Sequence record: LR588166.1
Direction: 5' to 3' (one strand)
Length of the DNA stretch: 64,000 nucleotides
A model generated the notes under the pieces. That model ran no database searches. It saw only the letters and a program-made list of their open reading frames with translations, and was not told where the DNA came from. How positions within the stretch are numbered: the stretch's first letter is position 1; each line of letters opens with the position of its first letter. Of this stretch, positions 1 to 32,111 are shown one piece after another. Position numbers and translations under genes: made by a program.

Positions 1-159
1 ACTAATCTTAGAACAAATATTCACTTGATTTTTCTCCCAATATAGTGTATGTCTATATTAGATAAGATTAAGTCTTGTTTGCTTGTTACATTTTATATGT
101 TGCAATGCTAAGGCAATGACAATATTATATGTACAGCAACACAAAACAGGAGATATAAC

Positions 160-465
160 ATGTCAGCAGAATTGAAGCGGTTGTTAGAGATTTTTCCAAC
201 CTTTAAATCATTCATTTATGCTAAAGGGGCATATGGCATTGATGTTTGGAAGGCTACAGGTAGTGTTACTTTGGAACAGGTAACCAATGCTGTTAATGCA
301 GGTAATGCAGAATGGCAATGTAAAGGTGATCCAACATGCAGCCTGGAACAAAACAGCATGTATATTTTCATTACTATTCAGGAACCAGACTACACAGGAA
401 TGGTTGATATTGATATTTGTGTAAAGATTACTAACGGTAATGAAGTAAGTTATCAAATAGCATAA
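160..465 (+). CDS. hypothetical early protein (101 aa)
   Basis: ACAGGAG RBS before ATG; followed by a terminator hairpin. Confidence 0.8.
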   Translation: MSAELKRLLEIFPTFKSFIYAKGAYGIDVWKATGSVTLEQVTNAVNAGNAEWQCKGDPTCSLEQNSMYIFITIQEPDYTGMVDIDICVKITNGNEVSYQIA

Positions 466-466
466 T

Positions 467-496
467 AAAGGAAAGGGGCAACTGCCCCTTTCCTTA
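467..496. terminator. intrinsic terminator hairpin
   Basis: AAGGAAAGGGGCA-ac-TGCCCCTTTCCTT inverted repeat right after the stop. Confidence 0.8.
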
Positions 497-506
497 TGAC
501 CATTGA

Positions 507-527
507 TGCAAACTATTCTTATTTGCA
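507..527. promoter_or_regulatory. conserved 21-bp Fur-box-like motif, copy 1
   Basis: TGCAAACTATTCTTATTTGCA, identical to 932..952; reverse strand matches the 21-bp Fur consensus at 13/21. Confidence 0.55.
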
Positions 528-601
528 CATCAAAAAAATATCTATTGAATTCTATTATTATGATGCTATTATATATAGTGTAATTAACTCGGAGTAAAGT
601 T

Positions 602-889
602 ATGCAACCTCTAAAGCAATTGCCACAAAACTACGCAATAATCACTCCAACTAGTGTTACTAATTTTAGCTGCACCTTTTCTGAAGCCTATTGCAAAATA
701 AAAGCAGAATGCAAAAACGTTTTCTGTTGGGTTCGTTGGGGTGACCACGGCGTTGCAATGAAGCGCCGAATTGATCCACCGTATGTAGTGTATCGAAACA
801 ACGGACGACAACGAAAAGCAGTTCTTGTAAACGTAGACAAAGCCCCTGTTAATTGGCAAGACGAACTTAAACAACTATACAAATGGTAA
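602..889 (+). CDS. hypothetical early protein (95 aa)
   Basis: GGAG RBS; followed by a terminator. Confidence 0.75.
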   Translation: MQPLKQLPQNYAIITPTSVTNFSCTFSEAYCKIKAECKNVFCWVRWGDHGVAMKRRIDPPYVVYRNNGRQRKAVLVNVDKAPVNWQDELKQLYKW

Positions 890-890
890 T

Positions 891-921
891 TAAGAAAAGG
901 GCTATTATAGCCCTTTTCTTA
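891..921. terminator. intrinsic terminator hairpin
   Basis: TAAGAAAAGGGCTA-tta-TAGCCCTTTTCTTA. Confidence 0.8.
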
Positions 922-931
922 TGACCGTTAA

Positions 932-952
932 TGCAAACTATTCTTATTTGCA
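932..952. promoter_or_regulatory. Fur-box-like motif, copy 2
   Basis: TGCAAACTATTCTTATTTGCA directly after the terminator. Confidence 0.55.
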
Positions 953-1070
953 CGATCCCGCGCTTATAACACAAGTATGTTACAAAAGCAAGAATAAAAT
1001 TAACTTGACACCTATATGTAGAATATAGCACAATGTGTTTATAAATTATATTACTACAGGAGTGTTAACC

Positions 1071-1442
1071 ATGTTCAAATGCAAATTGTTTGTAGTAGAT
1101 CCTGTTTATAACAACCTTTGCTACACTCAACAAATATGGCTCGATAGTGACATAAATGTGTGTAGCCAAATAAAGCGTATTATTTCTGACGTAGAATTGG
1201 CATGCGCAAACAGGATAGTAAATAATCCTCATAGTCCACTATGCGTTAAATCGGCAGCATTAAAAATGGTTATGGACGGGCGCATTGACATCGAACTCAA
1301 AGATGTCGATAGTTACGTTGATCAATATAAAGACATTCTTCCTAGCACAAATATTTTGGGTGTTTTTAAACCGACGTTTTTATCTAACTGGAAAGAAGAG
1401 TGTGAACTTTATTTCCTCACTTGTGTTGAAAAAGACAATTAA
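1071..1442 (+). CDS. hypothetical early protein
   Basis: Start moved to ATG 1071, which has an ACAGGAG RBS and is in frame with the 1035 ORF. Confidence 0.75.
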   Translation: MFKCKLFVVDPVYNNLCYTQQIWLDSDINVCSQIKRIISDVELACANRIVNNPHSPLCVKSAALKMVMDGRIDIELKDVDSYVDQYKDILPSTNILGVFKPTFLSNWKEECELYFLTCVEKDN

Positions 1443-1453
1443 TATAATATAAT

Positions 1454-1741
1454 ATGGAATATGATTTAAAAAATATTGTTTCGAAGACTATCTTATCTAA
1501 TAAAATTAAGATAGTCTCTTTACGTACTGTAGTAAAAACTCAGTATAAAAGAGTAGACTTCCATTATAAGATAGAATGTGAAAATAGTTCTGCAAAACGT
1601 AATTTGGTGCTTGCCCGTATATGCAAACCATTAGAACACACATTAGGTTCAAAACTTGTTTATGTAGATATTGTGCCTATCAAGTTTAAGAAAGATGAAA
1701 TGCCATCTACTATTCTATCAGTAAGTGTAATGACCGATTGA
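1454..1741 (+). CDS. hypothetical protein (95 aa)
   Basis: ORF directly follows the previous gene; no clear SD. Confidence 0.6.
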   Translation: MEYDLKNIVSKTILSNKIKIVSLRTVVKTQYKRVDFHYKIECENSSAKRNLVLARICKPLEHTLGSKLVYVDIVPIKFKKDEMPSTILSVSVMTD

Positions 1742-1766
1742 TATTTGGATTTGATATCTGGAAATA

Positions 1767-1787
1767 TAATAGTAATTCTTATTTGCA
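1767..1787. promoter_or_regulatory. Fur-box-like motif, copy 3
   Basis: TAATAGTAATTCTTATTTGCA; reverse strand 14/21 to Fur consensus. Confidence 0.5.
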
Positions 1788-1833
1788 ATTATAATAAATT
1801 CTTGTTTACTTTTAAAATAAAAGCAAATTCTAG

Positions 1834-1862
1834 TTGCATAGCTAGCGGCACTGTGCTAGTAT
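1834..1862 (+). promoter_or_regulatory. sigma70-type early promoter
   Basis: TTGCAT-17-TAGTAT with TG extended -10. Confidence 0.65.
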
Positions 1863-1892
1863 ATTAAAAAATAAAGACAGGAGTGTTATTAC

Positions 1893-2075
1893 ATGCAAAC
1901 CAAAGCAACCGAGTTGGCAGTAGGCGATGTTGTTTTCTACAACGGCATGAAAATGACTATCCAGAAAATTTCTAAAGGTCGGTGTGCAATAGATATTACA
2001 CTAGTAAATACTTTGGCTAAACTCACATCTTATGTGACAGTCGACTACGACGAAGAATTTGAAGAAGTATTATAA
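1893..2075 (+). CDS. small hypothetical protein, possibly SH3/KOW-like
   Basis: ACAGGAG RBS; ELAVGDVVFYNG pattern; ends at a bidirectional terminator. Confidence 0.7.
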   Translation: MQTKATELAVGDVVFYNGMKMTIQKISKGRCAIDITLVNTLAKLTSYVTVDYDEEFEEVL

Positions 2076-2091
2076 TGCAGAAATTATAGTC

Positions 2092-2122
2092 ATAAGAAAA
2101 GGGGCAATGCCCCTTTTCTTAT
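2092..2122. terminator. bidirectional terminator
   Basis: ATAAGAAAAGGGGCA-a-TGCCCCTTTTCTTAT between convergent genes. Confidence 0.85.
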
Positions 2123-2358
2123 AGTCCCAACAAATGTTTGCCACTTTTGACTTGCATCATACGCACTTTCTTTTTGCGCATTTGCGTTCTTACGTTCAGG
2201 CTGTTGGGACCTTTGAAGCTATACAGTATTTCAGTAGTCCCGTCTTCATAGTTGCGTACCACATTTGCAACAATTTGACTGCCTTCCTGGAACGCTTCGA
2301 TAAACACGCAGTAATTGAAATTTTCCTTGTTAGCGTTATGTGCGCGTAGTTGCATCAT
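2119..2358 (-). CDS. hypothetical protein (79 aa)
   Basis: GCAGGAG RBS on the minus strand; upstream TTGCAT..TATACT promoter; ends in the terminator. Confidence 0.75.
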   Translation of the reverse strand: MMQLRAHNANKENFNYCVFIEAFQEGSQIVANVVRNYEDGTTEILYSFKGPNSLNVRTQMRKKKVRMMQVKSGKHLLGL

Positions 2359-2502
2359 TTTCTGTTACTCCTGCGTTGTTTTGCTTTGTTATGTGTAGTA
2401 TACGCTATGTGTGTACTAATGCAAGAATTTTCTTCCATTTTCTTTCAAATAAAATGTTATTAGCATCTATTCTGTTATAACATTTTCTACGACTTCATGT
2501 TT

Positions 2503-2529
2503 TGCAAATAAGAATTAATCGCATTTGCA
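2503..2529. promoter_or_regulatory. Fur-box-like motif, copy 4 (inverted, extended)
   Basis: TGCAAATAAGAATTAATCGCATTTGCA; first 21 nt 13/21 to consensus; oriented with the minus-strand gene. Confidence 0.55.
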
Positions 2530-2712
2530 TTCCTACCTATCTGCCTAAAATTTAGGCAGCCTGGGTGATTGTCTCCCCCCGCCCTATTACTGGTCTCTGT
2601 ATAAAGATAATAGCACATTTGTATCTGCATGCAAGCATTTTTTGTAGAATTTTTCTCTTGACATTCCTTGCTGTAGGCTACATTATGCACACACAGAGCA
2701 GGAGATACCATT

Positions 2713-3093
2713 ATGGCACTCATAGCATTAGTAGCAACCGCATATGACAAAGAAGGCGATAAGTTCGACTATGTTCGATATCTTAAAGCTCATATCAATT
2801 TTGTTTCTGCTCAAGATCAACTGAAAGAATGGATCAAAAACAAAATTGATGCAAGTATAGCAGAAGTTAAAATCGGATTACGTGCAGAAATCGAAGTATT
2901 GGCCTATTTGGGAAACTATATAAGCCATAGTCAACGGATTATTAGTCCCGCTGGGATCATCATGTACATTGTTCTTGATGAGAAGTATGTTAATGAACTT
3001 CACGGTCAAATTTCTAATGCAATTGATTGTGAAGAAAAGAAACATGTAATAAAGAAAGAAGAAAACGTCACTTATATTGATTTTAAAAAATAA
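2713..3093 (+). CDS. hypothetical protein (126 aa)
   Basis: AGCAGGAG RBS; TTGACA upstream at 2658. Confidence 0.8.
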   Translation: MALIALVATAYDKEGDKFDYVRYLKAHINFVSAQDQLKEWIKNKIDASIAEVKIGLRAEIEVLAYLGNYISHSQRIISPAGIIMYIVLDEKYVNELHGQISNAIDCEEKKHVIKKEENVTYIDFKK

Positions 3094-3094
3094 C

Positions 3095-3123
3095 TTGCAT
3101 TAGCTGTAATGTATATGTATTAT
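3095..3123 (+). promoter_or_regulatory. sigma70 promoter of the candidate sRNA
   Basis: TTGCAT-17-TATTAT. Confidence 0.7.
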
Positions 3124-3129
3124 GTACTC

Positions 3130-3286
3130 AAGTTTGCAGCAAGACGTATTAATTTGTTTTGCTGTTAGTTGTAACTCCTGCTACCAAGTATGTGTTGAGC
3201 TAATGCTCCTGACTTGGTTCTTGGTACACTGGTTTGGGTGTACCGTTCTTGAGCTGCAAAGGGCTTGCCCGGCGCAGCTTTTTTTT
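3130..3286 (+). ncRNA. candidate ~157-nt structured small RNA
   Basis: Own promoter; stems 3136-45/3156-65, 3184-89/3212-17, 3223-29/3238-44; terminator AGCTGC..GGG-CTTG-CCC..GCAGCT plus T8; no RBS-led ORF. Confidence 0.7.
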
Positions 3287-3302
3287 GACTAATATTATTC
3301 AT

Positions 3303-3332
3303 TTGACAAAAAATAATAATTAAAAATATAAT
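3303..3332 (+). promoter_or_regulatory. sigma70 promoter
   Basis: TTGACA-18-TATAAT. Confidence 0.7.
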
Positions 3333-3366
3333 AGCTTAGTGTATAACTTCCCATATTAGGCTAATT

Positions 3367-3738
3367 ATGAAATTTGTTATTGCTGCTATTGCATTGTCTT
3401 TGTCCACACTAGTTTCTGCAGAATCTATTTCTGAAGTTAAGATAACTAAAGAAACATGCCTTACACTTCTGGAATTATCTAAGATTCATGTTGATATGGT
3501 AGTAAATGAACATATGAATGCAATACAAATTGCATCTCATATGGATATTGTATCTAATTTGTATAAGAATAATAATAGTAAATGGCTTGCATTCTTGCAG
3601 GCTCAAGCAAATATTTCAAAATTAATTGATGACGTATATGAGTTTTCATCTACTGAAGAAAGAAAGATTATTCCTCTAGCCATATTTAACGGTTGTATGG
3701 AAAGAGTTGGTAATACTTTTGAAATATATAAGAAATAA
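3367..3738 (+). CDS. putative exported/periplasmic protein
   Basis: Sec-type signal peptide pattern MKFVIAAIALSLSTLVSA|E. Confidence 0.75.
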   Translation: MKFVIAAIALSLSTLVSAESISEVKITKETCLTLLELSKIHVDMVVNEHMNAIQIASHMDIVSNLYKNNNSKWLAFLQAQANISKLIDDVYEFSSTEERKIIPLAIFNGCMERVGNTFEIYKK

Positions 3739-3739
3739 T

Positions 3740-4051
3740 ATGTATGTATATGTAGTCCACGGAATAGTCAATACAGGCGTTGAGACTAATATTTGTGATA
3801 TAGAACGTTACGTTACAGTTAACGACTTCCATGCTGTAGCAAAGTTTCTTAATTTTAAAGAACATATAGCAGCAAACCCAAACTTATATATACGATTAAT
3901 TACTACTGGATTGAATACTAAAAAGAACATATTAGAATTAAACTTATCGAAAAAAGAATATGTAGTATCGGGTTTTAGAGTTACATCAACTAATATAAAT
4001 GAATGCATTGAATATTACCTGTGTAGAAGGATATTTAAGTTACATGATTGA
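3740..4051 (+). CDS. hypothetical protein
   Basis: ATG 3740 lies 1 nt after the upstream stop; in frame with the 3707 ORF. Confidence 0.65.
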   Translation: MYVYVVHGIVNTGVETNICDIERYVTVNDFHAVAKFLNFKEHIAANPNLYIRLITTGLNTKKNILELNLSKKEYVVSGFRVTSTNINECIEYYLCRRIFKLHD

Positions 4052-4169
4052 ATTTATATTAAAATCCCTTTTATTAACTTCAGTTGTCAGTGTTGGCATA
4101 CTACTGATATTCATTATTATTTCACTGTTAATGTTTGGCTTAGCACCGATAGTTCCATTCCTTATTTAA
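4044..4169 (+). CDS. 41-aa membrane peptide (not in ORF track)
   Basis: MIEFILKSLLLTSVVSVGILLIFIIISLLMFGLAPIVPFLI; overlaps the upstream stop by 8 nt. Confidence 0.6.
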   Translation: MIEFILKSLLLTSVVSVGILLIFIIISLLMFGLAPIVPFLI

Positions 4170-4190
4170 TTTTAATTATTTGCAAGCAAA

Positions 4191-4217
4191 TGCAAATGCG
4201 AACAATTCTTATTATCC
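4191..4217. promoter_or_regulatory. Fur-box-like motif, copy 5 (extended)
   Basis: TGCAAATGCGAACAATTCTTATTATCC; reverse of 4197..4217 is 14/21 and includes GATAAT. Confidence 0.6.
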
Positions 4218-4383
4218 AGCAGGCCACTGTACCTAATCTTCGTTAGATAAAATCTATTAGAATCTACACAGTCCATTAAAACGTTCAATTGTACATGGTG
4301 GCCAGATCTGCATATACTACACACATGAAGCAAGCAAACAGCGCTTCATAAACAAACCCAAATACAGCTAGGAGTTCCAAATC

Positions 4384-4821
4384 ATGACCAAAGCAACCGT
4401 TACCGTCGAGCAATCCGCAATCAAACTGGTCCGCCGCAACCTGGAAGGGCACCGGCAAGCCCTGCTGCTGAACGGCGTCGAAGTAGGCAGCAGCGAAGCG
4501 TTCTACAAGACCAAAACCCAGCGCACCTGGTCGGCGAAGATCGACGCCAACATCAACGGCAAGGACATCGTCCTCGAACAGAAAGGTGTGTTCAGTGCGA
4601 TCCGGATCGCCCGGGCGATGGAACAAGCAATCCTGTTCATCCTGACCGACGGCAAAGAAGGCTCCGAGATGCCGGCTAGCACGCTGAGCAAGGAAGAACA
4701 AGCCCACAACCTGGTCAAGGCAGTAGTCCAGGTCGCCGCCCACGCTGTCCAGTCCGGCGCCGCTGCCCCGGCGAAGAAAGGCAGCTCGAAGAAGCGCAAA
4801 GAAGCCCAGCCGGAAGCATAA
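4384..4821 (+). CDS. hypothetical protein, GC-rich, basic C-terminal tail (145 aa)
   Basis: AGGAG RBS; G/C-ending codons; terminator follows. Confidence 0.85.
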   Translation: MTKATVTVEQSAIKLVRRNLEGHRQALLLNGVEVGSSEAFYKTKTQRTWSAKIDANINGKDIVLEQKGVFSAIRIARAMEQAILFILTDGKEGSEMPASTLSKEEQAHNLVKAVVQVAAHAVQSGAAAPAKKGSSKKRKEAQPEA

Positions 4822-4834
4822 TCCGGACTACACC

Positions 4835-4860
4835 GAGAAAGCACCGAAAGGTGCTTTCTC
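4835..4860. terminator. intrinsic terminator hairpin
   Basis: GAGAAAGCACC-GAAA-GGTGCTTTCTC. Confidence 0.8.
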
Positions 4861-4872
4861 TATGACTGTTAA

Positions 4873-4926
4873 TAGCAAATATTCTTATTTACATCTAATC
4901 TGAAATAATAATAACTCTTATTTACA
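4873..4926. promoter_or_regulatory. two Fur-box-like motifs, copies 6 and 7
   Basis: TAGCAAATATTCTTATTTACA (12/21) and TAATAATAACTCTTATTTACA (14/21); the second overlaps a TTTACA -35. Confidence 0.5.
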
Positions 4927-4977
4927 AATCATACTGAATAGTGTATTTTACACACTAAACATTGTAGGTAATACAAA

Positions 4978-5466
4978 TTGAATATATTTGTGACTGACAC
5001 AAATCCTTATGTATGTGCCAAACATCATTGTGATGTTCATCTAAGAAAGATGATAGTAGAAACAGCACAATTGTTAAGCACTACTCATTATATAATAAAC
5101 GGATATACTCCTGCATATAAACCTACTCATAAAAATCACCCATGTGCCGTTTGGATTAGAGAAAGTTCAAATAACTATAAATGGACTTATGAACTTCTTA
5201 CAAGTCTTATAAATGAATTTGAATATAGATTTGACAAACAACATGCAACTAAAATTCACCTTTCGTCATTAAAAACTATACCAAAACTCCCTAATATAGA
5301 AAGAACAGAGTTTGTCTTAGTTATGCCAGACGAATTTAAAACAGATAATGTAACACATTCATATCAGATATATTTGAATAACAAATTTAAAGAATGGGCA
5401 TCGAGATCTAACAGACCCATTTATGCTACATATACAAAGACACCTAAACCATATTTTATTAGTTGA
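4978..5466 (+). CDS. denV: pyrimidine-dimer DNA glycosylase/endonuclease V family protein
   Basis: MNIFVTD..P..CA..HCD.H..KMIVETAQLLST and Y(K)PTH.NHPC..W motifs of the Pyr_excise family. Confidence 0.8.
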   Translation: MNIFVTDTNPYVCAKHHCDVHLRKMIVETAQLLSTTHYIINGYTPAYKPTHKNHPCAVWIRESSNNYKWTYELLTSLINEFEYRFDKQHATKIHLSSLKTIPKLPNIERTEFVLVMPDEFKTDNVTHSYQIYLNNKFKEWASRSNRPIYATYTKTPKPYFIS

Positions 5467-5482
5467 AATATAATAAAAATGA

Positions 5483-5511
5483 TTGACATGTACATAAGAT
5501 CATATTATGCT
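5483..5511 (+). promoter_or_regulatory. sigma70 promoter
   Basis: TTGACA-17-TATGCT. Confidence 0.75.
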
Positions 5512-5538
5512 GTATAAAACAGCAAGGAGTAGATATAC

Positions 5539-5772
5539 ATGTACCGCAAACTGAATACAAATCCGCGCCCAATGCCAAAAACAAAGGCAATTCCAACTAA
5601 ATTTGTCATTCAGTACACTGCACGGAATAAAGCAACAGAAAGTTTGTTCAAAAAAAGAACTATTACATTACATGCGTTTGGGCGTCTCGATGCACAAACA
5701 CTCCTATCGAAACATATCCGAAAAAATAATTTGGAATTAGGTGTAATTATTGATTTCGGTGAAACAGTTTAG
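5539..5772 (+). CDS. hypothetical basic protein (77 aa)
   Basis: AAGGAG RBS, own promoter and terminator. Confidence 0.8.
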   Translation: MYRKLNTNPRPMPKTKAIPTKFVIQYTARNKATESLFKKRTITLHAFGRLDAQTLLSKHIRKNNLELGVIIDFGETV

Positions 5773-5780
5773 TTAGTAAC

Positions 5781-5811
5781 AAAGGAAAGGGGAATTAATC
5801 CCCTTTCCTTT
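5781..5811. terminator. intrinsic terminator hairpin
   Basis: AAAGGAAAGGGGA-atta-atCCCCTTTCCTTT. Confidence 0.8.
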
Positions 5812-5823
5812 TATTAAGTCAAA

Positions 5824-5850
5824 TGCAAATACAAATTATTCTTATTTGCA
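5824..5850. promoter_or_regulatory. Fur-box-like motif, copy 8 (extended)
   Basis: TGCAAATACAAATTATTCTTATTTGCA; 13/21 for 5830..5850; a TTGTAT-17-TACACT promoter follows at 5865..5893. Confidence 0.55.
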
Positions 5851-5932
5851 CAGATCAGACCCTGTTGTATTCTCCATTACGTGGTGCTACACTGTAAACA
5901 GTTGCACAAAACCATAAGCAGGAGTGTTAAAA

Positions 5933-6229
5933 ATGAACCAAGTGAATAACACCGAAGAGATGGCGTACATCCGCAATCTGCTTCAGTCTGAAGATGCAGT
6001 AAAATACTTTGCTCGCAAAGTCAACGACCTCATCGGCAAAGAGGCATTCGAGCGGCTCCTTAACGGCTTGTCCTACGAGGAGAATGTGGCACTGAACCTG
6101 ATGATCGAAAACAATCTCGTTAGCTTGCACAGCGATGGCTTTGTCGGTATCAAGTTCGATCTCAAACTGGAAGACGTGCGGTCAGACGTCGACTTCACCG
6201 ACGAAGGCTTCGAGCTAGAGGAAGAGTGA
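5933..6229 (+). CDS. hypothetical acidic protein, GC-rich
   Basis: AGCAGGAG RBS before ATG 5933. Confidence 0.8.
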   Translation: MNQVNNTEEMAYIRNLLQSEDAVKYFARKVNDLIGKEAFERLLNGLSYEENVALNLMIENNLVSLHSDGFVGIKFDLKLEDVRSDVDFTDEGFELEEE

Positions 6230-6366
6230 TGGCTTACTACAATGAATTCTGAATACTGAAAAGTGCCTAAGAAGTAATTCCAGTTGTATCTAAAACACTA
6301 TATGTTATTATACATATAGTGTTTTTATTTCTTATAATTATATTCAATAATAATGGTAAAATATAT

Positions 6367-6690
6367 ATGATTGAAGTAATTAAATGCATTATATGTAATG
6401 AATCACCCCGACCCGGTGCATTTGCAGCATTTATTACTCAAATGCGTCAAGTAGTAAAACCTCATGCAACTATAACTAGTTGGAATATTCTGCCCGGCAT
6501 TAATGATGATCCAACTAGTTATATTCATGCATTCAGTATAAAATCAAAAACAGCATACGATATTAATCAAGCGATTACCTTATTACTAATGTCATTATAT
6601 AATGCTAGTGAATATAAGACTAACTACATACCTACTTCGTTTAAAGACTATGAATCTACAATAAAGCATTTATCTAAGATCAAACAATAG
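6367..6690 (+). CDS. hypothetical protein with N-terminal CxxC
   Basis: In frame with the 6319 ORF; start uncertain. Confidence 0.55.
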   Translation: MIEVIKCIICNESPRPGAFAAFITQMRQVVKPHATITSWNILPGINDDPTSYIHAFSIKSKTAYDINQAITLLLMSLYNASEYKTNYIPTSFKDYESTIKHLSKIKQ

Positions 6691-6754
6691 CCAGTTGCAT
6701 ATTTACAAATATACATGTATGCTAATATGTATACACAATCATGAGTACAATATC

Positions 6755-6910
6755 ATGACAAAAGAAATTGCTTTTACTGAAGGATTAAAAGCAGGCGCTC
6801 AAATAAAAGAAGGCAAAGCTATCCTAACTGACTTCTTTCGATATTTCAATTCCTTACCAACTAATATGAGAACTTCTTTTATTATCGGTATCAAAACCGG
6901 TAGGAACTAA
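6755..6910 (+). CDS. small hypothetical protein
   Basis: TTGCAT-17-TATGCT promoter at 6695..6723 places the start at ATG 6755. Confidence 0.6.
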   Translation: MTKEIAFTEGLKAGAQIKEGKAILTDFFRYFNSLPTNMRTSFIIGIKTGRN

Positions 6911-6997
6911 TAAGCATATTAATTTTCATATTTTGGTAGACAAAGGTACTCACTGGATGCATACTGTATACATACAGAACATACGGAGTACAAAGGG

Positions 6998-7267
6998 ATG
7001 GACGCGCACTGCCTGCTTAGCCTTATCGAAGACCTCCCTATAGCTGTCTTCGGTAGCACAATGGATATTGTTCATCGAGTCAATTTTGAAGCTCTGGACA
7101 ATGCCGCGCACACCGACGGAGTAAAAGTCCACGAAGATGGAACCAACCGTTATACGGACGCTTTTGTTGATTGTTGGCTCCGCAGCGTCGAAACAGTTTT
7201 GGCCTGTTGCGATTTTGTGACTGAGGATGCCGCTAAGTGGTATACCGAGCACGGTGTCAAGTTTTGA
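6998..7267 (+). CDS. hypothetical protein, GC-rich
   Basis: GGAG upstream; coding-like composition. Confidence 0.6.
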   Translation: MDAHCLLSLIEDLPIAVFGSTMDIVHRVNFEALDNAAHTDGVKVHEDGTNRYTDAFVDCWLRSVETVLACCDFVTEDAAKWYTEHGVKF

Positions 7268-7298
7268 CATCCTCTACCTGCGCCTGCAGATAAAAAGG

Positions 7299-7327
7299 TT
7301 GACGTAGACTAGCAATGGACACATAAT
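7299..7327 (+). promoter_or_regulatory. sigma70 promoter, duplicated at 8695
   Basis: GTTGACG-17-CATAAT-AATTACAAC. Confidence 0.75.
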
Positions 7328-7361
7328 AATTACAACACAACCAGCCCAGGAGGGCAAAACT

Positions 7362-7511
7362 ATGTGTAACATTCAATGCATGAACAGCAAAGCCGGCGAG
7401 TCCTACGCATGGATTTGGAGCGATAGTGATAGCGATATCTGCTACGAAGTCATCTTCCGGCATGGCCAAGTCCTCACCCAGGTTTGGCTCGGCTATGATA
7501 TCGTAGCCTAA
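7362..7511 (+). CDS. 49-aa hypothetical protein (not in ORF track)
   Basis: AGGAGGG RBS; MCNIQCMNSKAGESYAWIWSDSDSDICYEVIFRHGQVLTQVWLGYDIVA; hairpin 7521..7543 follows. Confidence 0.7.
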   Translation: MCNIQCMNSKAGESYAWIWSDSDSDICYEVIFRHGQVLTQVWLGYDIVA

Positions 7512-7560
7512 CACCAACTAAAGCCCCGTCCCAGGCGGGGCTTCACTGAAGGAAAGGATC

Positions 7561-7770
7561 ATGATCGAACAACTGAAAGACATGCTCGTAGCGCAACGCA
7601 TGCGCATGAACCAACTCGAAAAACTGCGCTACACCGGACGGGTCGCTAGCGAGTTGCATGCCCACGCCAGAGAATTGTGTGAAGCCTTGGAACTGGCAAT
7701 TGCAAATGCCCAGTGCCTGGAAATGCGCAAGTTCGAAGAAGCCGCCCTGCACGCCCTGTTCGCACAATAA
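7561..7770 (+). CDS. hypothetical helical protein (69 aa)
   Basis: AAGGA RBS; GC-rich codons. Confidence 0.75.
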   Translation: MIEQLKDMLVAQRMRMNQLEKLRYTGRVASELHAHARELCEALELAIANAQCLEMRKFEEAALHALFAQ

Positions 7771-7803
7771 CCCACCACGCACAACCCGACAAGGAAACCA
7801 ACC

Positions 7804-8295
7804 ATGAGCACTACCATCCCCGATTCGATTCATCCGAGTGACCTTCCCGAAATCAGCCAGGGGCTGGCTGATGGAACCTTCTTTGTCCGCCATTGGCTCA
7901 ATGGCAAGGAATACGCCTACGTCGATCTCGGCAAAAGCGCCGAGTTCACTGGAGAATGGGGCGAGTATGGGCTGGACGTGGACAGCGCCGTTAGCTATCG
8001 AGACGGAGCTTCGAACACGATCGCTATGGCTGAAGCTGGCAGCCCGATTGCCAAGCAAGCTATGGAGATCGGAGAAGGCGTATTCATTCCTTCTGTTCTG
8101 GAACTGGCTCTTCTGTTCTCAGCAAATCAAGCAGGCGAGCTGTCTGGTTTCGCAGATCGCTGGTACTGGTCGAGTTCGCAGTACTCCGCCTGCGGCGCCT
8201 TCCGCATGCATTTCGGTGATGGCGAGGCTAGTGTCGCCATCAAGAGCAGCGCCTGGTTGGTCCGCCCCGTCCGCAAGATTCTCATTCTTCAGTAA
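7804..8295 (+). CDS. DUF1566 (Lcl C-terminal, C-type-lectin-fold) protein
   Basis: IPSVLEL...WYWSSSQYSA..AF.M.F.DG......K.....VRPVR signature. Confidence 0.8.
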   Translation: MSTTIPDSIHPSDLPEISQGLADGTFFVRHWLNGKEYAYVDLGKSAEFTGEWGEYGLDVDSAVSYRDGASNTIAMAEAGSPIAKQAMEIGEGVFIPSVLELALLFSANQAGELSGFADRWYWSSSQYSACGAFRMHFGDGEASVAIKSSAWLVRPVRKILILQ

Positions 8296-26500: not shown

Positions 26501-29500
26501 ATGTATTTTCAGTATCGTAATAATGCCATATTGAATCAGTTAAATTCTCAAAGTTTTGTAATAGATTATCATCTTGTATTAAATAACCATCCGCCTCAAA
26601 TTTACCGTACCAATCGTTTGTGCGAATGCCGCGTAACTGAAGTCTTTTTTGTCTAGAGTATAGTAACGGATCGTATATAGTATCGTTAAATATAGTTTTG
26701 TTATCAAAAAGTATAGCGTGTTCTGTATCGCTTGTAGAAACACGGAATAAATATATTCCAATTTGATCGCTTTCGTGAGATACAGAGATAGTTCTTCTGT
26801 CCCTGTCTATAATAGTATCATTAGGCGATATAGCATATCCATTTTGATCTAATATACTATAAACACCATTTGATATTCTTTCTACCTTCTCAGGATAACC
26901 TTCGTTTACTTCTAATGTAATTTTAGAAGCACCCGGGGCGACGAATAAAGTGTTATTTGGTGCCCATTGAGTAGTTGCCCAGAATAAGAATCCCTTAGCA
27001 GAAGTAACCCAATTTAATACTTCTCCTGTAGTTTGGTCTATTTCATTAAATTTCCATCCGTTTAATTCTAAATACTGACCATACCCTATCAGGAAATCAA
27101 ATACATCCTGAGGAGTATCTAATTCACTTCCGTATTCTATTTCGTAGAATTCGCTATAATCTCCTTCATTAATATAGTTTACTGTTATACCGCCAGTTGC
27201 AGGAAGTGATTTTAGACGCATCCAGTTATCTTGATTAAATTTTCCCTGTGATGCAATAACAACGCATTGGTAGTAGACTCCATTGTACCGAACTACATCT
27301 CCATAGTTGTACTGAACATTAGTGTCATAAATTGTGAAATTAGAAGTTGTTCCGCCTACATTTATTGTAGTTCCAGATACTAATGTACTTCTAGGAACAA
27401 CTTTAAATACAGGATTTAATACATCATATCCTCTTACTTCAAATTTTCCATATTCGTTTACACGTATTGCAACACCGCTGAATACGTATTCAGTTATAGG
27501 TTTGCCGGTGTATACTCTTACATGTATATTTTCGTTAGGTAACAACATGCTAGAATTAGTAGAGCCGCCAGATATACTATCAGCATATACGTTCAATGTA
27601 TCTACATTGGTATATCCTGCAAGTCTATGTGCTAAACAAACATCTAACGAACGTATCTTACTACCGAAATTGTATGTAATATCTTGTTTACCCATGAAGG
27701 ACAATCTATCAAATACATATTGTTGATATCCAGAGTTTAACACTATATTTCCATTTACTACTTCGCCGTGGGCATATGTGTTACTATTAGCAATTCTGGT
27801 ATATGTAGAACTTGATATATACTGCTTCGCGTTTATGGGTGCTCTTGTATCGTCAAGTGGATTCCAGTATCTTTCTCCGAAATCTGCAGGTTTCATTAAA
27901 TATAACAATTCTAACTGAACAAATGGCCATTCCGAATTGGTATACCATGCTTCTTCTACAGGACTATTGTCCCCGAATATCCATTCGTCTTGAAGTGTTT
28001 CTATTTCTTGATTAGAAAGCTGCGGAACTATACCTAACTCCTCTGGTGTTTTTAAATCACCAGAAGTATCTGACGGTATTAGATTTGGAACTAATCCAGT
28101 TCTTTTATACTTTTCGTGGGTGCCTGCTCTATTGCCACGGCGAATTATACCGTTTTCAATATCAGTCCACATATCAGTATTTTGTGAAGTATAATCTCCA
28201 TTATATTCTTCATCCCACCAGGTCGGCTTTTCTACAAACCCTAACATTTCCCATGGTGTTTTATTAGGTGTTAGTGTGTTATAGTAGTATTTGTATAATC
28301 CGCGCCAGGATCCGATAGAATCGTTACTAACTGGACGATAATTCCAGGTTTTCCAGTTTAACGAATTAAATCCAGAATATAATTTATAATTAAGACTATT
28401 CTTTAAACACCATTTTAAGAAATAAGGTTTTACTATTTCATTATATTGTTGCAGAGTATACCCGTTTTCATAAAATTTTGTCGGTTTTACATCGTCTAAT
28501 TTAAGTAATAAATTGTAATCTAGTCTAAATTTGTCGGCAATATTGTTATATATTCTTGTTTCGAATTCTAATAATAGATCATCCCTAATATCGCCGTAGG
28601 TGGGTATTTTAGAACCATCATGACCTAAAATTACTTCTGTAGGAGTAACATAACTATTATCTACAATTATTTTAGGTTGATATACAGGATAACATCCTAT
28701 TTTAGAAGGTGTTGCAGGTATTTTTGCAGAAAGTATGTTATTGTATATACGAACAATATACGACGTATTCGAAGGTGTGCTAGACAGTTTAACAACTAAA
28801 TTATTATTAGAATACGATAGTGTATAGTCTTTATCTATTGTTAATGTATTGTAATCAACAGAAGTGCCAGTTCTTCTAAATACAAGAACAGAAGAATCCA
28901 TTTTATCTAATATGTTATTAGTCGGTACTAATAATGTATTTCCTACTGATGCGCTAGAGAAATTGTATTCATCGTATACATCACCCCATGCAGCCATATA
29001 TGATTGCGTGAAGGCACCATTGTATTCGAACGTACTAGTAACGCGATTTATCACATACGTAAACAATGCATCTATGTTTACTGGGTTTGTATTTTGATTT
29101 AAAGGCGCTGCTATTAATTCTTTTGCATATTTTATGAACTTATCTTTATATCTAGTATACTCGTCGCGTGCAAATCTTATAGCAGAATTTATATTTAATT
29201 CTTCGCTAGAAGATACAAGCATTGTTTTTAACAATGGACTTCTATTTTGTAGAATAAATGTACCTAAAGATTTGTCTTCAGCAGTATCTCTGTAATTATT
29301 ATTAGAACTATAAGGATCTCCTTTAAATCCTATTTGATTAGTCATTATACTAACAAAATGGTTTGTTAACTCGTTCGACGAGTATTCATTTACTTCTAAG
29401 TTGTTAGGGTTATTCTCTAATTGTTGTGGAATTTGATAATACCCTAGTGCGTTATCTGGTAAAGCTTCTTTAGAATAGGTGTATGTTTGAATAACATCGG

Positions 29501-32111
29501 TTGCAGAGAGTGATCTCAATATTTTTATAGTTTTAGTAGGTTTCCCGTCGTTATCCAGGACTATAGTAAATTCCACATTCTGTGCAAGGGTAGATTTATT
29601 GTATTCTACTCTTATGTCAAATATACCCGGTTCCAATTCTTCGGGTGTTACGCTTAGTTCGTATTCTTTTTGCGAAGAATCCGATACTACAAATCTATCT
29701 ATCACTCTTTGTTTAGAATTTCCGTCAAATGGCACCCAGGTATGCTCATATGTGGGATTAGAGCCAGATATTGTATAATTCCATTGTTTAAAATAATAAT
29801 AACCTTTTATTGGTTCGAATTCATTTCCGTTAAAGTATTGGAATACATCCGTGTGAAGATCGTGTCTAAACACAATATCGGATATTTGACCTAAGTTTTT
29901 TACTTCAATAGGAAATCCTAATATTTCATCGTCGTATGCACTTTCTTCATTTACTTTATACGAAAAAATCTTAGATCCAGCAAATGTAGATTGCGGGAAA
30001 CTATCTAACGAAATTGCATTGTTATTAGAGTCTAAATCAGTATAATATAAATTAAATAAAGGAGCTTGGTTAGCATTTGTTTTTCTATTATAAGTCCTTT
30101 CCCATTGTACTCCAGTATAATAGAACATGTCTCCTGCAAATGTATCTCCTTCAGTTACTAATACTACATCTCCTTTAGCAACTTTTGTGTATTTGTTAGG
30201 AATAGGGATTATACTGTTTACTACAGTATTGTCTGGCTGTTCTACTTTAACTATTTTCCATATATAGTCTGTTGCATTTAATGTAAGAGTTTCGTTATCT
30301 CTTACTATTAATTTAACAATACTATCGTCAGGCACTATATTTTTAAATTCTACTAATAGTGCATTATCTTGTTCTATTGTAAAACTAACAAAATCATCTG
30401 CAGGATTATATAAGTAGTTATACGATACTGGATCATTGTTTGCATCTCTTGTATATGCATCTATTTGAATACCTATTATATGATTACCTATATTTTGTTG
30501 AGTAAAATTAAAAGTAAAATCATTATTAAATAAAAATGTTCTTCTGGCGCCTGGTCCTTCTATTGCTTCGGCAGCCGGCTTCTTATACATGTTTACTTTA
30601 TTGTTTACATTTATTTCTACTTGGTCACCAGGCAATAACCCATCTATGTTATCATTTATGATTACATCAAATGCTAAATTAGTAGGTAAGGTAGTTCCTG
30701 TAATGGTTACAATGCTATTATTCTTGCCAACAGGTGTATTTAATGTTTCTACATTAAATGTAAACGAAGTTCTCGGCTGTCTTATAGATGTTCCTCTGTT
30801 AACTACATCTATAGTCTTAATAGTTCCTACGCTAGATGGTGTATAAAATTTATATTCAATTCCATTTGTTATGTTTTCGAAACTAACATTGTTTATATCA
30901 TACGAAATAGGATTCCATTGCAATCCTTTTGTGTCTGCAATGAAATTCATTTGGTTTAATTCATCTTCGTACGAATACCATTCAGGATTGTAAAACATTT
31001 TGTTACCACGTTTTACAATTACAAATATATCATCTGTATCAGTAAATGGCTTTCGTAATATTATATTGTATGGTGCTACATCTGCAATAAATGTATCTAC
31101 AATTGGATAAGTTATTGTGCTATTAGACAAGAAAATTAACTTATCTTGATCTTCTAATAGTTTTCCATCAATAGTGTATGATGCAGAATTTGATATACTA
31201 GAAATATTATCAGACTCGGCTACTAGATTAACTTCACCTAAGTAATTATTTCCAGATTTAAATAACTCTATATCTCTATCAAACTCTATAATAGGTCTTC
31301 TTGCCTTAACTGCATTGTTATACGTAGATGTATTAGTTGCAGAGGCAGAAGTTGCCATTACAGATTTATGATACCATTTGTTAGTGCGGGACCATGCGTT
31401 TCCATCTCTACAGCCACGTTCTATAGTGATATAATCTACCGAACCAACAGTATCTACTAAGTGAGATTCATCTTTTACTAAAATAATACCTTTTCCGACA
31501 CCTTCTACAGTTAATGGTCTATTAAATGAGGACGAGTTAGTATATTGTATTCTAAGTCCGTTAGAAAGCTGAATAGTATTACCGTTTTCTAATGTTATAC
31601 TGGCGTTCTTTTTTCCTATTATATTGTTTATTATCCATTCGTCTGCGTTTATACCGCTTTCGTTTTCTACTGTTAACATAATAACAGGCAGCCGATCTTC
31701 TATCCAATAATAATTTTGGAAATTTATAAATTTATCTAAATCTATCGGCGGACCGAAAGAATAATATCCACCAGAAAATAAAGTGTCATTATTCTTTGTA
31801 TTGGCACCATAATAATTTAACCTGTTTAACAAGTCTTGGTAAAACATTATATTTGTTTGATCTAACGTAGTAGAATCAACACTATACGAGGTTGCTTCTA
31901 ACTGATACCAAGTCCGTTCTTTAGTAGGTTCTGCTAAGTAATAATCATTTATAGGATCATGTCTACCGGGAACTCTTCTACCTATGTAAGCAGTTATATC
32001 CTCTACATTCTTTTTAGAAAATAGTTGCTCAAATGTAGCTAAAAAGAATCTTTTTTGGGTATCTGTTCTAAATATACCAGGTAACTTGTTAAACGTTTTT
32101 AATGTTGCCAT
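20538..32111 (-). CDS. giant baseplate wedge/structural protein (3857 aa)
   Basis: Uninterrupted 11.6-kb ORF directly downstream of gp6, in the T4 gp7-like position. Confidence 0.8.
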   Translation of the reverse strand: MATLKTFNKLPGIFRTDTQKRFFLATFEQLFSKKNVEDITAYIGRRVPGRHDPINDYYLAEPTKERTWYQLEATSYSVDSTTLDQTNIMFYQDLLNRLNYYGANTKNNDTLFSGGYYSFGPPIDLDKFINFQNYYWIEDRLPVIMLTVENESGINADEWIINNIIGKKNASITLENGNTIQLSNGLRIQYTNSSSFNRPLTVEGVGKGIILVKDESHLVDTVGSVDYITIERGCRDGNAWSRTNKWYHKSVMATSASATNTSTYNNAVKARRPIIEFDRDIELFKSGNNYLGEVNLVAESDNISSISNSASYTIDGKLLEDQDKLIFLSNSTITYPIVDTFIADVAPYNIILRKPFTDTDDIFVIVKRGNKMFYNPEWYSYEDELNQMNFIADTKGLQWNPISYDINNVSFENITNGIEYKFYTPSSVGTIKTIDVVNRGTSIRQPRTSFTFNVETLNTPVGKNNSIVTITGTTLPTNLAFDVIINDNIDGLLPGDQVEINVNNKVNMYKKPAAEAIEGPGARRTFLFNNDFTFNFTQQNIGNHIIGIQIDAYTRDANNDPVSYNYLYNPADDFVSFTIEQDNALLVEFKNIVPDDSIVKLIVRDNETLTLNATDYIWKIVKVEQPDNTVVNSIIPIPNKYTKVAKGDVVLVTEGDTFAGDMFYYTGVQWERTYNRKTNANQAPLFNLYYTDLDSNNNAISLDSFPQSTFAGSKIFSYKVNEESAYDDEILGFPIEVKNLGQISDIVFRHDLHTDVFQYFNGNEFEPIKGYYYFKQWNYTISGSNPTYEHTWVPFDGNSKQRVIDRFVVSDSSQKEYELSVTPEELEPGIFDIRVEYNKSTLAQNVEFTIVLDNDGKPTKTIKILRSLSATDVIQTYTYSKEALPDNALGYYQIPQQLENNPNNLEVNEYSSNELTNHFVSIMTNQIGFKGDPYSSNNNYRDTAEDKSLGTFILQNRSPLLKTMLVSSSEELNINSAIRFARDEYTRYKDKFIKYAKELIAAPLNQNTNPVNIDALFTYVINRVTSTFEYNGAFTQSYMAAWGDVYDEYNFSSASVGNTLLVPTNNILDKMDSSVLVFRRTGTSVDYNTLTIDKDYTLSYSNNNLVVKLSSTPSNTSYIVRIYNNILSAKIPATPSKIGCYPVYQPKIIVDNSYVTPTEVILGHDGSKIPTYGDIRDDLLLEFETRIYNNIADKFRLDYNLLLKLDDVKPTKFYENGYTLQQYNEIVKPYFLKWCLKNSLNYKLYSGFNSLNWKTWNYRPVSNDSIGSWRGLYKYYYNTLTPNKTPWEMLGFVEKPTWWDEEYNGDYTSQNTDMWTDIENGIIRRGNRAGTHEKYKRTGLVPNLIPSDTSGDLKTPEELGIVPQLSNQEIETLQDEWIFGDNSPVEEAWYTNSEWPFVQLELLYLMKPADFGERYWNPLDDTRAPINAKQYISSSTYTRIANSNTYAHGEVVNGNIVLNSGYQQYVFDRLSFMGKQDITYNFGSKIRSLDVCLAHRLAGYTNVDTLNVYADSISGGSTNSSMLLPNENIHVRVYTGKPITEYVFSGVAIRVNEYGKFEVRGYDVLNPVFKVVPRSTLVSGTTINVGGTTSNFTIYDTNVQYNYGDVVRYNGVYYQCVVIASQGKFNQDNWMRLKSLPATGGITVNYINEGDYSEFYEIEYGSELDTPQDVFDFLIGYGQYLELNGWKFNEIDQTTGEVLNWVTSAKGFLFWATTQWAPNNTLFVAPGASKITLEVNEGYPEKVERISNGVYSILDQNGYAISPNDTIIDRDRRTISVSHESDQIGIYLFRVSTSDTEHAILFDNKTIFNDTIYDPLLYSRQKRLQLRGIRTNDWYGKFEADGYLIQDDNLLQNFENLTDSIWHYYDTENTLDNPIIEQTARHLIGFQDREYLNNLRITGDQQYLFYKGMISQKGTKQSVDKLLRSEFIKSNENIQIYEEFAFKLADFGATNSNAQLEVLIDGDLVKSDPQIVELSYPVSYGTGKVSEVRVLSSEMIYTTTPIIVFATPEEANAGLDPNVDAYLQGNQLNSPNNNIVEEIRATGQVVLKNGRIDSVTITEPGYGYIKPPKIAIIYNQTVITIDKLISIIKNKIDEDSPYDMIITIDSDDNERWLSKPNGRMPVIVGNEIKYNDRLVPTTKQLDGNIPTAGYVNTKDVTHQILYPKNIFTLWERKDVSKPSLTSYIWVGNASSVGIDWGVFVIYSGLTPATNALYPYCVINNMVYSYTVDSDGVIDAIFDKEGKQVTNVPIQNPLFFKNVRFKNNASVNVTSGKVWIDSINSDNDWAVAVVSGSTITNIRSRQNLVDSKLFENAYFYDKDTKQTIDFLPVYDPVKGLIPGTADRNIHYKSEIDPTTYSVSANSANIDDELAFTDSEVGRLWWDTSTCRYLQYEQPGKLDGSETKEQILEYRRDNWGKLFPGSVINVYEWVSSPFTPDLYNGTGTPKSLTDYVVRYDTNSAGQATPIYYYWVKGKQEIPNNIKSRNMTSTSVENLITNPKSQGYKWFSFIGNNSFVFSNVSKTINGKTPVFQVNYRYTKNINEKHTEWKLLREGDEVSVIPTYLWNRLVDSLVGYNINGDIVPDPTLSEFSKLGIKVRPRQSMIDNRMAARKVFVQNANSLLSTISIKDFNPAWADGLASSVLWRYVNWYADGFNQFNTTPVKQVSTVGELTGLVGKLKDGDIVKLVRPEEFTLYQYSNQNFTLIGRQNSAIQLLPAIYTVSRSYTNDNALRELIFALYNNVFKDANLVMRNLVFFALINYILSEQQNLDWVFKTTYIKVNQEGESLTQQESVTTDPIQSFISYIKEIKPYTTKIRDLGVKYNVPMDIANGTAYDYDSLYDWPDDHEGEQAPFRPIEVPRLFDINSLYDRVQCGYITKPNYIDLGDQTFIGTGGQVVLIANTPNDEFIALDGISQYQLGANKDISRITSVTINGQEIEGYTFTTILNATFIILPSTPDAGDVIIVNYTDIKSVWKIKVDGKTITKEQYDVEINENGYLQVTFKSNTLIKIGSKIKLYSGTEFTQTPLEEMRLEYNARQPGKVLKPIFDLAIDPAGKIAGGWGIPKWGQLRWGIPGTIQEGNRQLWTEYLQYSGAAGRYILYQTDLQRDILSAAPINGSYPYSSFTERLYESSAGERDVLFQFNERFGDEYGCDYEGKVIDAKDFEYIFSRPWDSTKWDEYAWDASTATYVITPNYTETSATVISEGKTTFVIRYVVDITGVTLNGSSTQYTATKGSNFTSIEVPGAVEGDEIVFTFNPVTNTFNSDTSKPIIDGAYFEDTNVREGIPEEQALVSPTENMVIIVDSNAKTTEVQYVVTNTDTSNPFVKIVLTEKIVLQDIIGLVINGDPNTEDKLKFNIDNNGINTVVIAYPTSFSTGDIISVVYKDNYTSQTTVANDYRFDTNSVVRDNTQGYITVDLRNTKQNKDINTWDTFAWDPSIDSPENADSVYLLPIDMPTIANPDEVVAQASGQLTYKFVDITANGVDTMIHTGMNILPNRVQGVYSSGVAMYGYTVVVDNSGITPELVINFEIAPSAGTVITVKYQSYSIMKLDDYVSYVMNKYNITSVTTSEYKLQTIDMFVAANKRMISVSNNLYTRKSKEMLYTNTKLFTVDTSIRNFVGETVYINGISKTKDKDYTIEFTNITGDNAKLLVVYKGTLNAGDIIRIDWTETNIQKVTDIVNNSWVAVFNEQHNFINPVTMQGDNVVIKYPAKPLSFRVHLDEMGETHYVRISDYYSTRLAKPLKLTDKSIELVDASAIVDPSSSKPGVVWIGTERIEFLYKRGNKLHGLTRGSLGTSVYTGTNGDTTVPLYTRVFDGSYKQEQEDTGKYIWENNNGGLALSTTPWAIFLQNRPGSGLTP

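Follow-up and report, generated by a model that had tools for sequence, protein, structure and literature searches.

An oriented array of imperfect dyads at early-unit boundaries in Wroclawvirus jumbo phages, a predicted operator network

In cluster A mycobacteriophages (L5 gp71 type), more than 20 dispersed, asymmetric 13-bp sites lie in promoters and short intergenic spaces, and their orientation correlates with that of transcription (PMC9283540). These phages are temperate, with immunity conferred by a monomeric two-domain helix-turn-helix (HTH) repressor. Repeated regulatory elements are known from virulent phages as well: Arbiol and colleagues are said to have described, in 2010, repeated promoter-early stem-loop cassettes of T4-type phages, which border small early genes where the genome is plastic and at which recombination takes place. 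Here we examine a repeated A/T-rich motif at positions 507-5850 of a 64,000-nt stretch of sequence record LR588166.1 (hereafter the window, meaning this whole stretch), which an initial annotation, made from the sequence alone, had interpreted as an array of eight operators resembling those of the iron regulator Fur.

Window positions 1-8000 are 100% identical to positions 224,171-232,170 of Pseudomonas phage vB_PaeM_MIJ3 (LR588166.1), which identifies the window as the final 64 kb of that record. MIJ3 is a PA5oct-like Pseudomonas jumbo phage (Wroclawvirus) with a genome of 33% G+C, and ten other Wroclawvirus genomes, including PA5oct, Cassandra, Deifobo, Ettore, Paride, Callisto, 30-2, 30-3 and PAC2, are 96-97% identical to it here. 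In PA5oct the corresponding stretch lies inside a 39,080-bp direct terminal repeat, where gp34-gp105 are highly transcribed early genes, and transcription depends on the host RNA polymerase, as it is abolished by rifampicin (PMC7318152). The guanines of PA5oct DNA are probably modified, since the DNA resists several restriction enzymes and the phage encodes genes for 7-deazaguanine synthesis.

A repeated 27-bp dyad confined to the early block

The exact 13-mer ATTCTTATTTGCA was found five times in window positions 1-6000, on the plus strand in sites 1, 2, 3 and 7 and on the minus strand in site 4 (Table 1), compared to 0.02 copies expected, and none of 100 shuffled sequences reached five; sites 5 and 6 contain inexact copies of the same core. 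The whole MIJ3 genome was scanned with a 19-column weight matrix, a strong half-site being defined as one scoring at least 16 bits. All 24 half-sites above this threshold fell within MIJ3 202,754-230,023 (27.3 kb) and every one of them was intergenic, while the other 261 kb of the genome contained none, the top score there being 15.1 bits. The array is thereby located in the block equivalent to PA5oct gp34-gp105, in the terminal-repeat region. It is cut by the edge of the window, which holds the last 5.5 kb of the 27-kb array, a further 21.4 kb lying upstream.

The array proposed initially is thus real and far above shuffle expectation, but it was incomplete, both because of the edge cut and because the unit is a 27-bp imperfect dyad and not the 21-bp motif then listed. 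Seven of the eight copies were as described, including the identical 21-mers at 507 and 932, and the copy at 4197 proved degenerate, with three core mismatches and an opposite arm (4188-4206) of 12.8 bits. The statement that all copies are intergenic held in the window and across the whole array, and the weight-matrix scan agreed that no copy occurs later in the window.

Each unit comprises one near-invariant 13-bp arm, the core, and a weak inverted arm, as is well seen at window 5824-5850 and 2503-2529 (minus strand). Three successive full dyads are found at L002 28586-28612, 28633-28659 and 28679-28705, where L002 is the piece of MIJ3 upstream of the window (L002 29063-29836 being MIJ3 203,234-204,007). 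Eleven of the 13 columns of the core, the strong arm, show little or no variation, and in the weak arm the information amounts to about 0.3-1 bit per column. Complementary cells make up 69.5% when the arms are in register, compared to 38-48% when one arm is slid by 1-3 columns. A typical site can be read as the hexamers GCAAAT and GCGAAT, one central base, and the hexamers ATTCTT and ATTTGC. A further in-phase TTTGCA often trails the 27-bp site, and the extra TTTGCA hexamers at 6-bp phase that had been noted in the first description were recovered in the aligned sites. Clusters of three to five sites also occur.

Comparison of MIJ3 with PA5oct, Cassandra and Callisto revealed 9 differences in 819 core positions (1.1%) and 248 in 7278 positions of the 60-nt flanks (3.4%; Fisher p = 8.6e-5, with comparisons that are not phylogenetically independent), so that the core evolves three times slower than the flanks; the weak arm showed 45 differences in 844 positions (5.3%) among the same four phages. 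More diverged relatives were available as short metagenomic contigs (L130, L133, L134 and L135) found through a GC-rich paralog protein family treated below. The contigs of these relatives have a G+C content of 47-51% and can be aligned to MIJ3 only in patches, the flanks mostly not at all. L135 encodes 10 half-sites in 7.2 kb, seven of them exact, L134 has nine in 4.2 kb, and L130 and L133 have two to three each, all of them intergenic. Searches of viral contigs with a 15-mer pattern and of genome contigs with a 17-mer pattern gave just single chance matches among the matches listed. The core was not found in a regulatory context in the published literature, and the MIJ3 and PA5oct genome papers, which describe only -35/-10 hexamers and terminators, do not mention the motif.

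Position of the sites between terminators and promoters

With the palindromic cluster left out, 16 of 18 sites have the strong arm pointing the same way as the gene that lies downstream (p = 0.0013). The start of 10 of the 22 site frames lies 10-18 nt past the stem of an intrinsic terminator and, conversely, 10 of the 25 plus-strand terminator-like hairpins in the early block have a site 10-18 nt after the stem. At a typical boundary, the stop codon is followed by an intrinsic terminator, a gap of 10-18 nt, the site, a second gap of 14-100 nt, a promoter and the gene; terminator and site make up a module of 60-100 bp that occurs repeatedly. For most sites, 14-100 nt separate the end of the site from the -35 element downstream, and the earlier estimate that they mostly lie 15-80 bp upstream of the -35 and not on it agreed well with the 14-81 nt measured. 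A -35-like hexamer is overlapped only by site 6, the TTTACA of which doubles as the -35 of a promoter-like site (4921-4949) upstream of a DenV-like gene.

The promoters linked to sites are mostly of one kind, combining a weak -35 (TTGCAT, TTGTAT or TTGAAT) with a TG-C-TAnnnT -10. At six sites the core ends 34-44 nt ahead of a TGnTAnnnT -10, placing the centre of the dyad near -60 to -70, and at the other sites the distance from core end to -10 is 70 to more than 100 nt. Near-consensus promoters lacking a site are also present in the block (window 3303-3332 and 5483-5511). The motif was itself considered as a sigma-70 promoter and rejected for want of a fixed -10, the distance from core to nearest TGnTAnnnT ranging from 5 to 170 nt with only site 6 fitting. 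As a separate observation, several site-linked promoters with a poor -35 have a C just upstream of the -10 hexamer (window 564-572, 1853-1862 and 5884-5893; L002 34870-34880). A C in this position is a feature of stationary-phase sigma promoters. Paride, from the same genus, needs host RpoS and (p)ppGpp signalling to grow on dormant cells.

Taken together, the array is a real, oriented and previously undescribed feature of Wroclawvirus that, judged from its sequence context, appears to mark the boundaries of early units, and an operator function is predicted for it.

Table 1 Sites of the array and neighbouring features in the window. Scores are from the weight matrix.
Feature	Position	Strand	Remarks
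Intrinsic terminator of MIJ3_00351	472-490	+	First half of repeated terminator-plus-site cassette
Site 1	501-527	+	Exact core 515-527; 25.5 bits; starts 11 nt past terminator stem
Sigma-70-like promoter with TG	545-572	+	TTGAAT, 16 nt, TATTAT; -35 starts 17 nt past site 1
MIJ3_00352	602-889	+	Between two near-identical cassettes
Site 2	926-952	+	Exact core 940-952; 23.1 bits; starts 10 nt past terminator stem
Site 3	1761-1787	+	Exact core 1775-1787; 24.0 bits; weak left arm; without upstream terminator
Promoter TTGCAT/TGCTAGTAT	1834-1862		46 nt downstream of site 3
Site 4	2503-2529	-	Exact core 2503-2515 (-); 23.0 bits; between divergent MIJ3_00356 (-) and MIJ3_00357 (+), co-oriented with MIJ3_00356
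Degenerate TGCAAA/TTTGCA hexamer cluster	4169-4215	.	Includes the 4197 copy; 12.8 bits on minus strand; about 170 nt upstream of P3
Promoter-like site in CAATTGTACA leader motif	4290-4318	+	TGTACA, 17 nt, TATACT
P3 (MIJ3_00360)	4384-4821	+	GC-rich paralog gene
Intrinsic terminator of P3	4835-4862	+	
Site 5	4867-4893	+	Core 4881-4893, 1 mismatch; 16.9 bits; starts 11 nt past terminator stem
Site 6	4900-4926	+	Core 4914-4926, 2 mismatches; 15.1 bits
Intrinsic terminator of MIJ3_00362	5787-5806	+	
Site 7	5824-5850	+	Core 5838-5850; 26.4 bits; best dyad of the window; starts 14 nt past terminator stem
Promoter	5865-5893	+	TTGTAT, 17 nt, TACACT preceded by TGC; -35 starts 14 nt past site 7

Candidate binders and alternative explanations

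We favour, with moderate confidence, an interpretation in which a single sequence-specific DNA-binding protein, most likely encoded by the phage, uses the motif as its operator and acts on the whole Wroclawvirus early block. A phage-encoded regulator, which had been named from the start as an equally valid binder, would fit the sequence data best. The sites would then mark boundaries between early transcription units, where the bound protein would work in an orientation-dependent way. It could reinforce or insulate the termination just upstream. It could also act on the neighbouring promoter from a position near -60 to -70, as an activator of that promoter or as a factor that silences the early block, and about 20 units would thereby be co-regulated by a single factor.

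Several results weigh against such a phage operator. Pfam searches of about 62 early-region proteins revealed no DNA-binding domain of the HTH, winged-helix, ribbon-helix-helix or Fur-family type, and neither did comparison of 10 early-region proteins with PHROGs, nor a sequence search against the PDB with three basic conserved proteins and a profile of the paralog family, return a DNA-binding family. A model of that paralog family likewise gave no informative structural match when compared by Foldseek to the PDB and BFVD. Furthermore, a single activation geometry is a poor fit to site-promoter distances that range from 14 to more than 100 nt, and the uniform terminator-site spacing could have been inherited with duplicated cassettes of common origin rather than being functional. 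The product of window 4978-5466, annotated as a possible DNA binding protein, was considered as the regulator and rejected, as it corresponds to a DenV-like pyrimidine-dimer glycosylase (Pfam Pyr_excise, E = 6e-4; phrog_624, E = 3e-51).

The paralog family consists in MIJ3 of three genes of 59-62% G+C, here named P1 (L002 29084-29788), P2 (L002 47979-48446) and P3, the products of which share 45-48% identity across a 75-residue N-terminal domain. The three densest site clusters each have one of these genes 170-430 nt further downstream, and in MIJ3 and the relatives L130, L133, L134 and L135 a dense cluster is found 170-470 nt upstream of 7 of the 9 family genes, a sample that is biased since the contigs were found through the family itself. 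The CAATTGTACA leader motif is common to two of the three MIJ3 genes (P2 and P3) and to L130 and L134. P3 is predicted to have a beta-rich N-terminal domain and a disordered tail with basic residues at its end, and the AlphaFold2 model of the family suggests a beta domain of six strands, then a helix and a disordered tail (predicted local distance difference test score 72, and 85-90 for the N-terminal domain). No Pfam or PDB relative of the family was found, a paralog alignment search of viral contigs gave nothing, and a HMMER search against 1.84 billion representatives returned about 10 small relatives along with spurious matches to giant repeat proteins. The family is restricted to Wroclawvirus-like phages, and its alleles are hypervariable. 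In PA5oct, P1 (EST35_0038) is annotated as a virion protein and was detected by mass spectrometry, and P1 could therefore enter the cell together with the DNA. The family may, on the other hand, merely be the most tightly controlled target and not the binder. We also observed that MIJ3_00305 (L002 29063-29836) is annotated on the minus strand, whereas the plus-strand open reading frame at 29084-29788 equals EST35_0038 and is a paralog of MIJ3_00347 and MIJ3_00360; the MIJ3_00305 annotation is thus probably on the wrong strand.

A different explanation would dispense with a dedicated binder altogether. The motif would then be what has been conserved of a duplicated terminator-promoter cassette, maintained through descent and recombination and similar to the promoter/stem-loop cassettes of T4-type phages, and it might serve as an upstream promoter element or a recombination signal. 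The 60-100 bp cassettes are indeed repeated, and they flank small early genes at places where gene content varies. MIJ3_00352 lies between direct cassette repeats (window 441-530 and 866-955) and is present in MIJ3 and Cassandra, while PA5oct and Callisto lack the gene and have a single cassette with the junction inside the repeat. At the P2 locus of the metagenomic contig L128, the upstream cluster is kept but the encoded protein is just 44% identical to P3. Based on the MIJ3_00352 polymorphism and this difference in allele, the terminator-plus-site cassettes probably double as recombination points at which early genes are gained and lost. Descent alone is nevertheless insufficient, since the core persists amid unrelated flanks and without a terminator (e.g. 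window 1761-1787 and L002 39222-39248) and is three times more conserved than the surrounding cassette sequence, and neither the dyad symmetry nor the clusters of three to five sites would be explained by it. We therefore regard this explanation as unlikely.

A number of further features were noted along the genome. Perfect tandem repeats of 3 x 42 bp (L002 28456-28582, following the terminator of PA5oct ncRNA001) and 7.5 x 12 bp (L002 47416-47505) are located directly upstream of the two densest clusters. Window 7772-8000 is 90-94% identical to the unrelated P. aeruginosa siphophages D14O, Haboob, FBPa42 and phPA-G, which suggests a recent horizontal exchange at MIJ3_00367. The small early protein encoded at L002 43216-43419 is weakly similar to ribosome modulation factor (Pfam RMF, E = 3e-5, which falls short of the curated cut-off) and may be relevant to infection of dormant cells, and an annotated virion structural protein (L002 35631-36095) carries a dual-specificity phosphatase signature (Pfam DSPc, E = 9e-6, below cut-off). 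A 270-nt intergenic gap around window 3095-3295, with a promoter-like site, a G+C-rich structured stretch, a T-run and no notable open reading frame, may encode a small non-coding RNA; Rfam gave no match there and found only tRNAs overall.

Instead of a phage protein, another DNA-binding protein of the host, such as a global regulator or a nucleoid protein, might bind at about -65 and activate weak extended -10 early promoters from the time of DNA entry. Early transcription needs only the host RNA polymerase, the promoters combine a poor -35 with a TG-C-TAnnnT -10, the spacing of six sites is class-I-like, Pfam revealed no phage regulator among the early-region proteins, and Paride shows the dependence on host RpoS and (p)ppGpp on dormant cells mentioned above. 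On the other hand, the distances between site and promoter vary widely, neither the core nor its reverse complement was found in any published Pseudomonas operator, and the public genome and viral collections gave only the chance matches already described. The P. aeruginosa RsaL operator TATGAAATTTGCATA (PMC5314801) resembles the phage sites in being an A/T-rich dyad with the heptamer ATTTGCA, but this heptamer is the only stretch of sequence they share, the remainder of the phage core being absent from a 15-bp site with half-sites about 8 bp apart; RsaL was ruled out as the binder by this half-site spacing. A host protein other than Fur thus seems quite unlikely to be responsible.

Fur itself was proposed initially as the binder, with the array either titrating host Fur, as a sponge, or tying early expression to iron status. 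The resemblance is real in part. Like Fur boxes and polymerising Fur sites, the phage sites are built from A/T-rich hexamers in 6-bp phase, inverted about a single central base (e.g. 2503-2529, minus strand) and often followed by extra in-phase hexamers. Fur boxes are said always to have a central AANNNTT (PMC6922518), and about 15 of 21 phage sites have it as well (AA at -3/-2, TT at +2/+3), a feature that carries little information in A/T-rich DNA. Furthermore, GCAAAT/ATTTGC and ATTCGC, the hexamers of the Magnetospirillum gryphiswaldense feoAB1 operator in the co-crystal and native DNA, respectively, equal the arm hexamers of the phage sites (GCAAAT and GCGAAT; PMC4506495). One Fur dimer binds that operator, in which a single base separates the two hexamers (PMC4506495), whereas in the phage, which infects a different host, the GCAAAT-type hexamers are 13 bp apart with a second hexamer pair between them.

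The quantitative comparison used solely the 19-bp consensus as printed in PMC3145626, PMC4506495 and PMC6922518. The sites matched it at 9-14 of 19 positions, with a mean of 11.0 at the dyad register and 11.6 at the best register, in place of the 12-14 of 21 counted initially. A Pseudomonas Fur box has been taken to require at least 14 of 19 matches (PMC6922518), a value attained by only one of the 22 sites. As a group the sites do exceed the site-free intergenic windows of the block (11.6 compared to 9.5 of 19), but 20% of such 39-nt windows reach 11/19 and 6.6% reach 12/19, and 0.35% of all 19-mers in the MIJ3 genome (about 1000) have at least 12/19 matches. Considered as a single motif, the similarity to Fur is therefore unremarkable, typical scores being common in the background windows and the genome.

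The details of the sites also depart from what would be expected of Fur. The near-invariant C4, T6, T10 and G11 disagree with the consensus in its best register, and at the position 6 bp from the dyad, where Arg57 reads a guanine in Fur-DNA crystal structures (PMC4506495), the conserved arm has an invariant T (+6) and the opposite arm a G (-6) in just 9 of 21 sites. A strong asymmetry and orientation bias are unexpected for a symmetric Fur dimer. Fur boxes would be expected to overlap the -35 or -10 of the promoters they repress, whereas the phage sites rarely do so and lie mostly upstream of promoters, just past terminators. Modified guanines, as are probable in PA5oct, would, by inference, disturb major-groove reading of G and so hinder a host protein contacting guanine N7. 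Finally, the main text of the PA5oct transcriptome study singles out NAD, psl, nap and Pf1 genes, and neither iron nor siderophores are mentioned in it. Neither the sponge nor the iron-sensing regulon was thus supported, and we consider it decidedly unlikely that Fur is the binder.

That the element works at the RNA level, as a hairpin in read-through transcripts or as a site of their processing, is very improbable: the best dyads could form 13-bp A/U-rich hairpins and the sites lie in intergenic transcript regions, but most sites are found past terminators, the sequence is fixed in the strong arm and free to vary in the weak one, and covariation is absent (double changes in 3 pairs compared to 2.6 in shuffles, and 69.5% paired cells compared to 70.1%), which argues for a DNA dyad.

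Implications and relation to known operator systems

PA5oct, Paride and other Wroclawvirus phages are candidates for phage therapy, Paride being known for killing dormant P. aeruginosa, and they use the host RNA polymerase throughout infection. One conserved predicted operator at about 20 unit boundaries provides a concrete starting point in the search for the regulator and in the interpretation of existing RNA-seq data, and the array helps to explain how small early genes are shuffled between relatives. The attractive notion of an iron sponge is hereby corrected as unsupported.

Like the T4-type cassettes as they are reported, the elements described here are repeated regulatory cassettes which are situated at small early genes and probably serve as recombination points. 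They differ in that a dyad operator, as predicted here, follows the stem-loop, is separate from the promoter and is conserved beyond the cassette.

The similarity to the stoperators of cluster A mycobacteriophages is more extensive, both systems having more than 20 dispersed, asymmetric 13-mers in intergenic or promoter regions with a common orientation (here 24 half-sites, with 16 of 18 sites co-oriented). MIJ3 is described as virulent, unlike those temperate phages, and Pfam revealed no stoperator-type HTH immunity repressor among the roughly 62 early-region proteins. The phage sites additionally have a weaker inverted arm, which suggests a dimer instead of a monomer, and they are confined to one 27-kb early block. 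A position 10-18 nt past the terminator is compatible with a stoperator-like blocking of elongating RNA polymerase. It is conceivable, if on the unlikely side, that this virulent jumbo phage runs its entire early programme by a stoperator-like network in which one factor, possibly a member of the GC-rich paralog family, binds more than 20 oriented sites just past terminators and thereby insulates and times about 20 early units. By analogy of site anatomy, the operator/stoperator network of cluster A mycobacteriophages appears to be the nearest known counterpart of the Wroclawvirus array.

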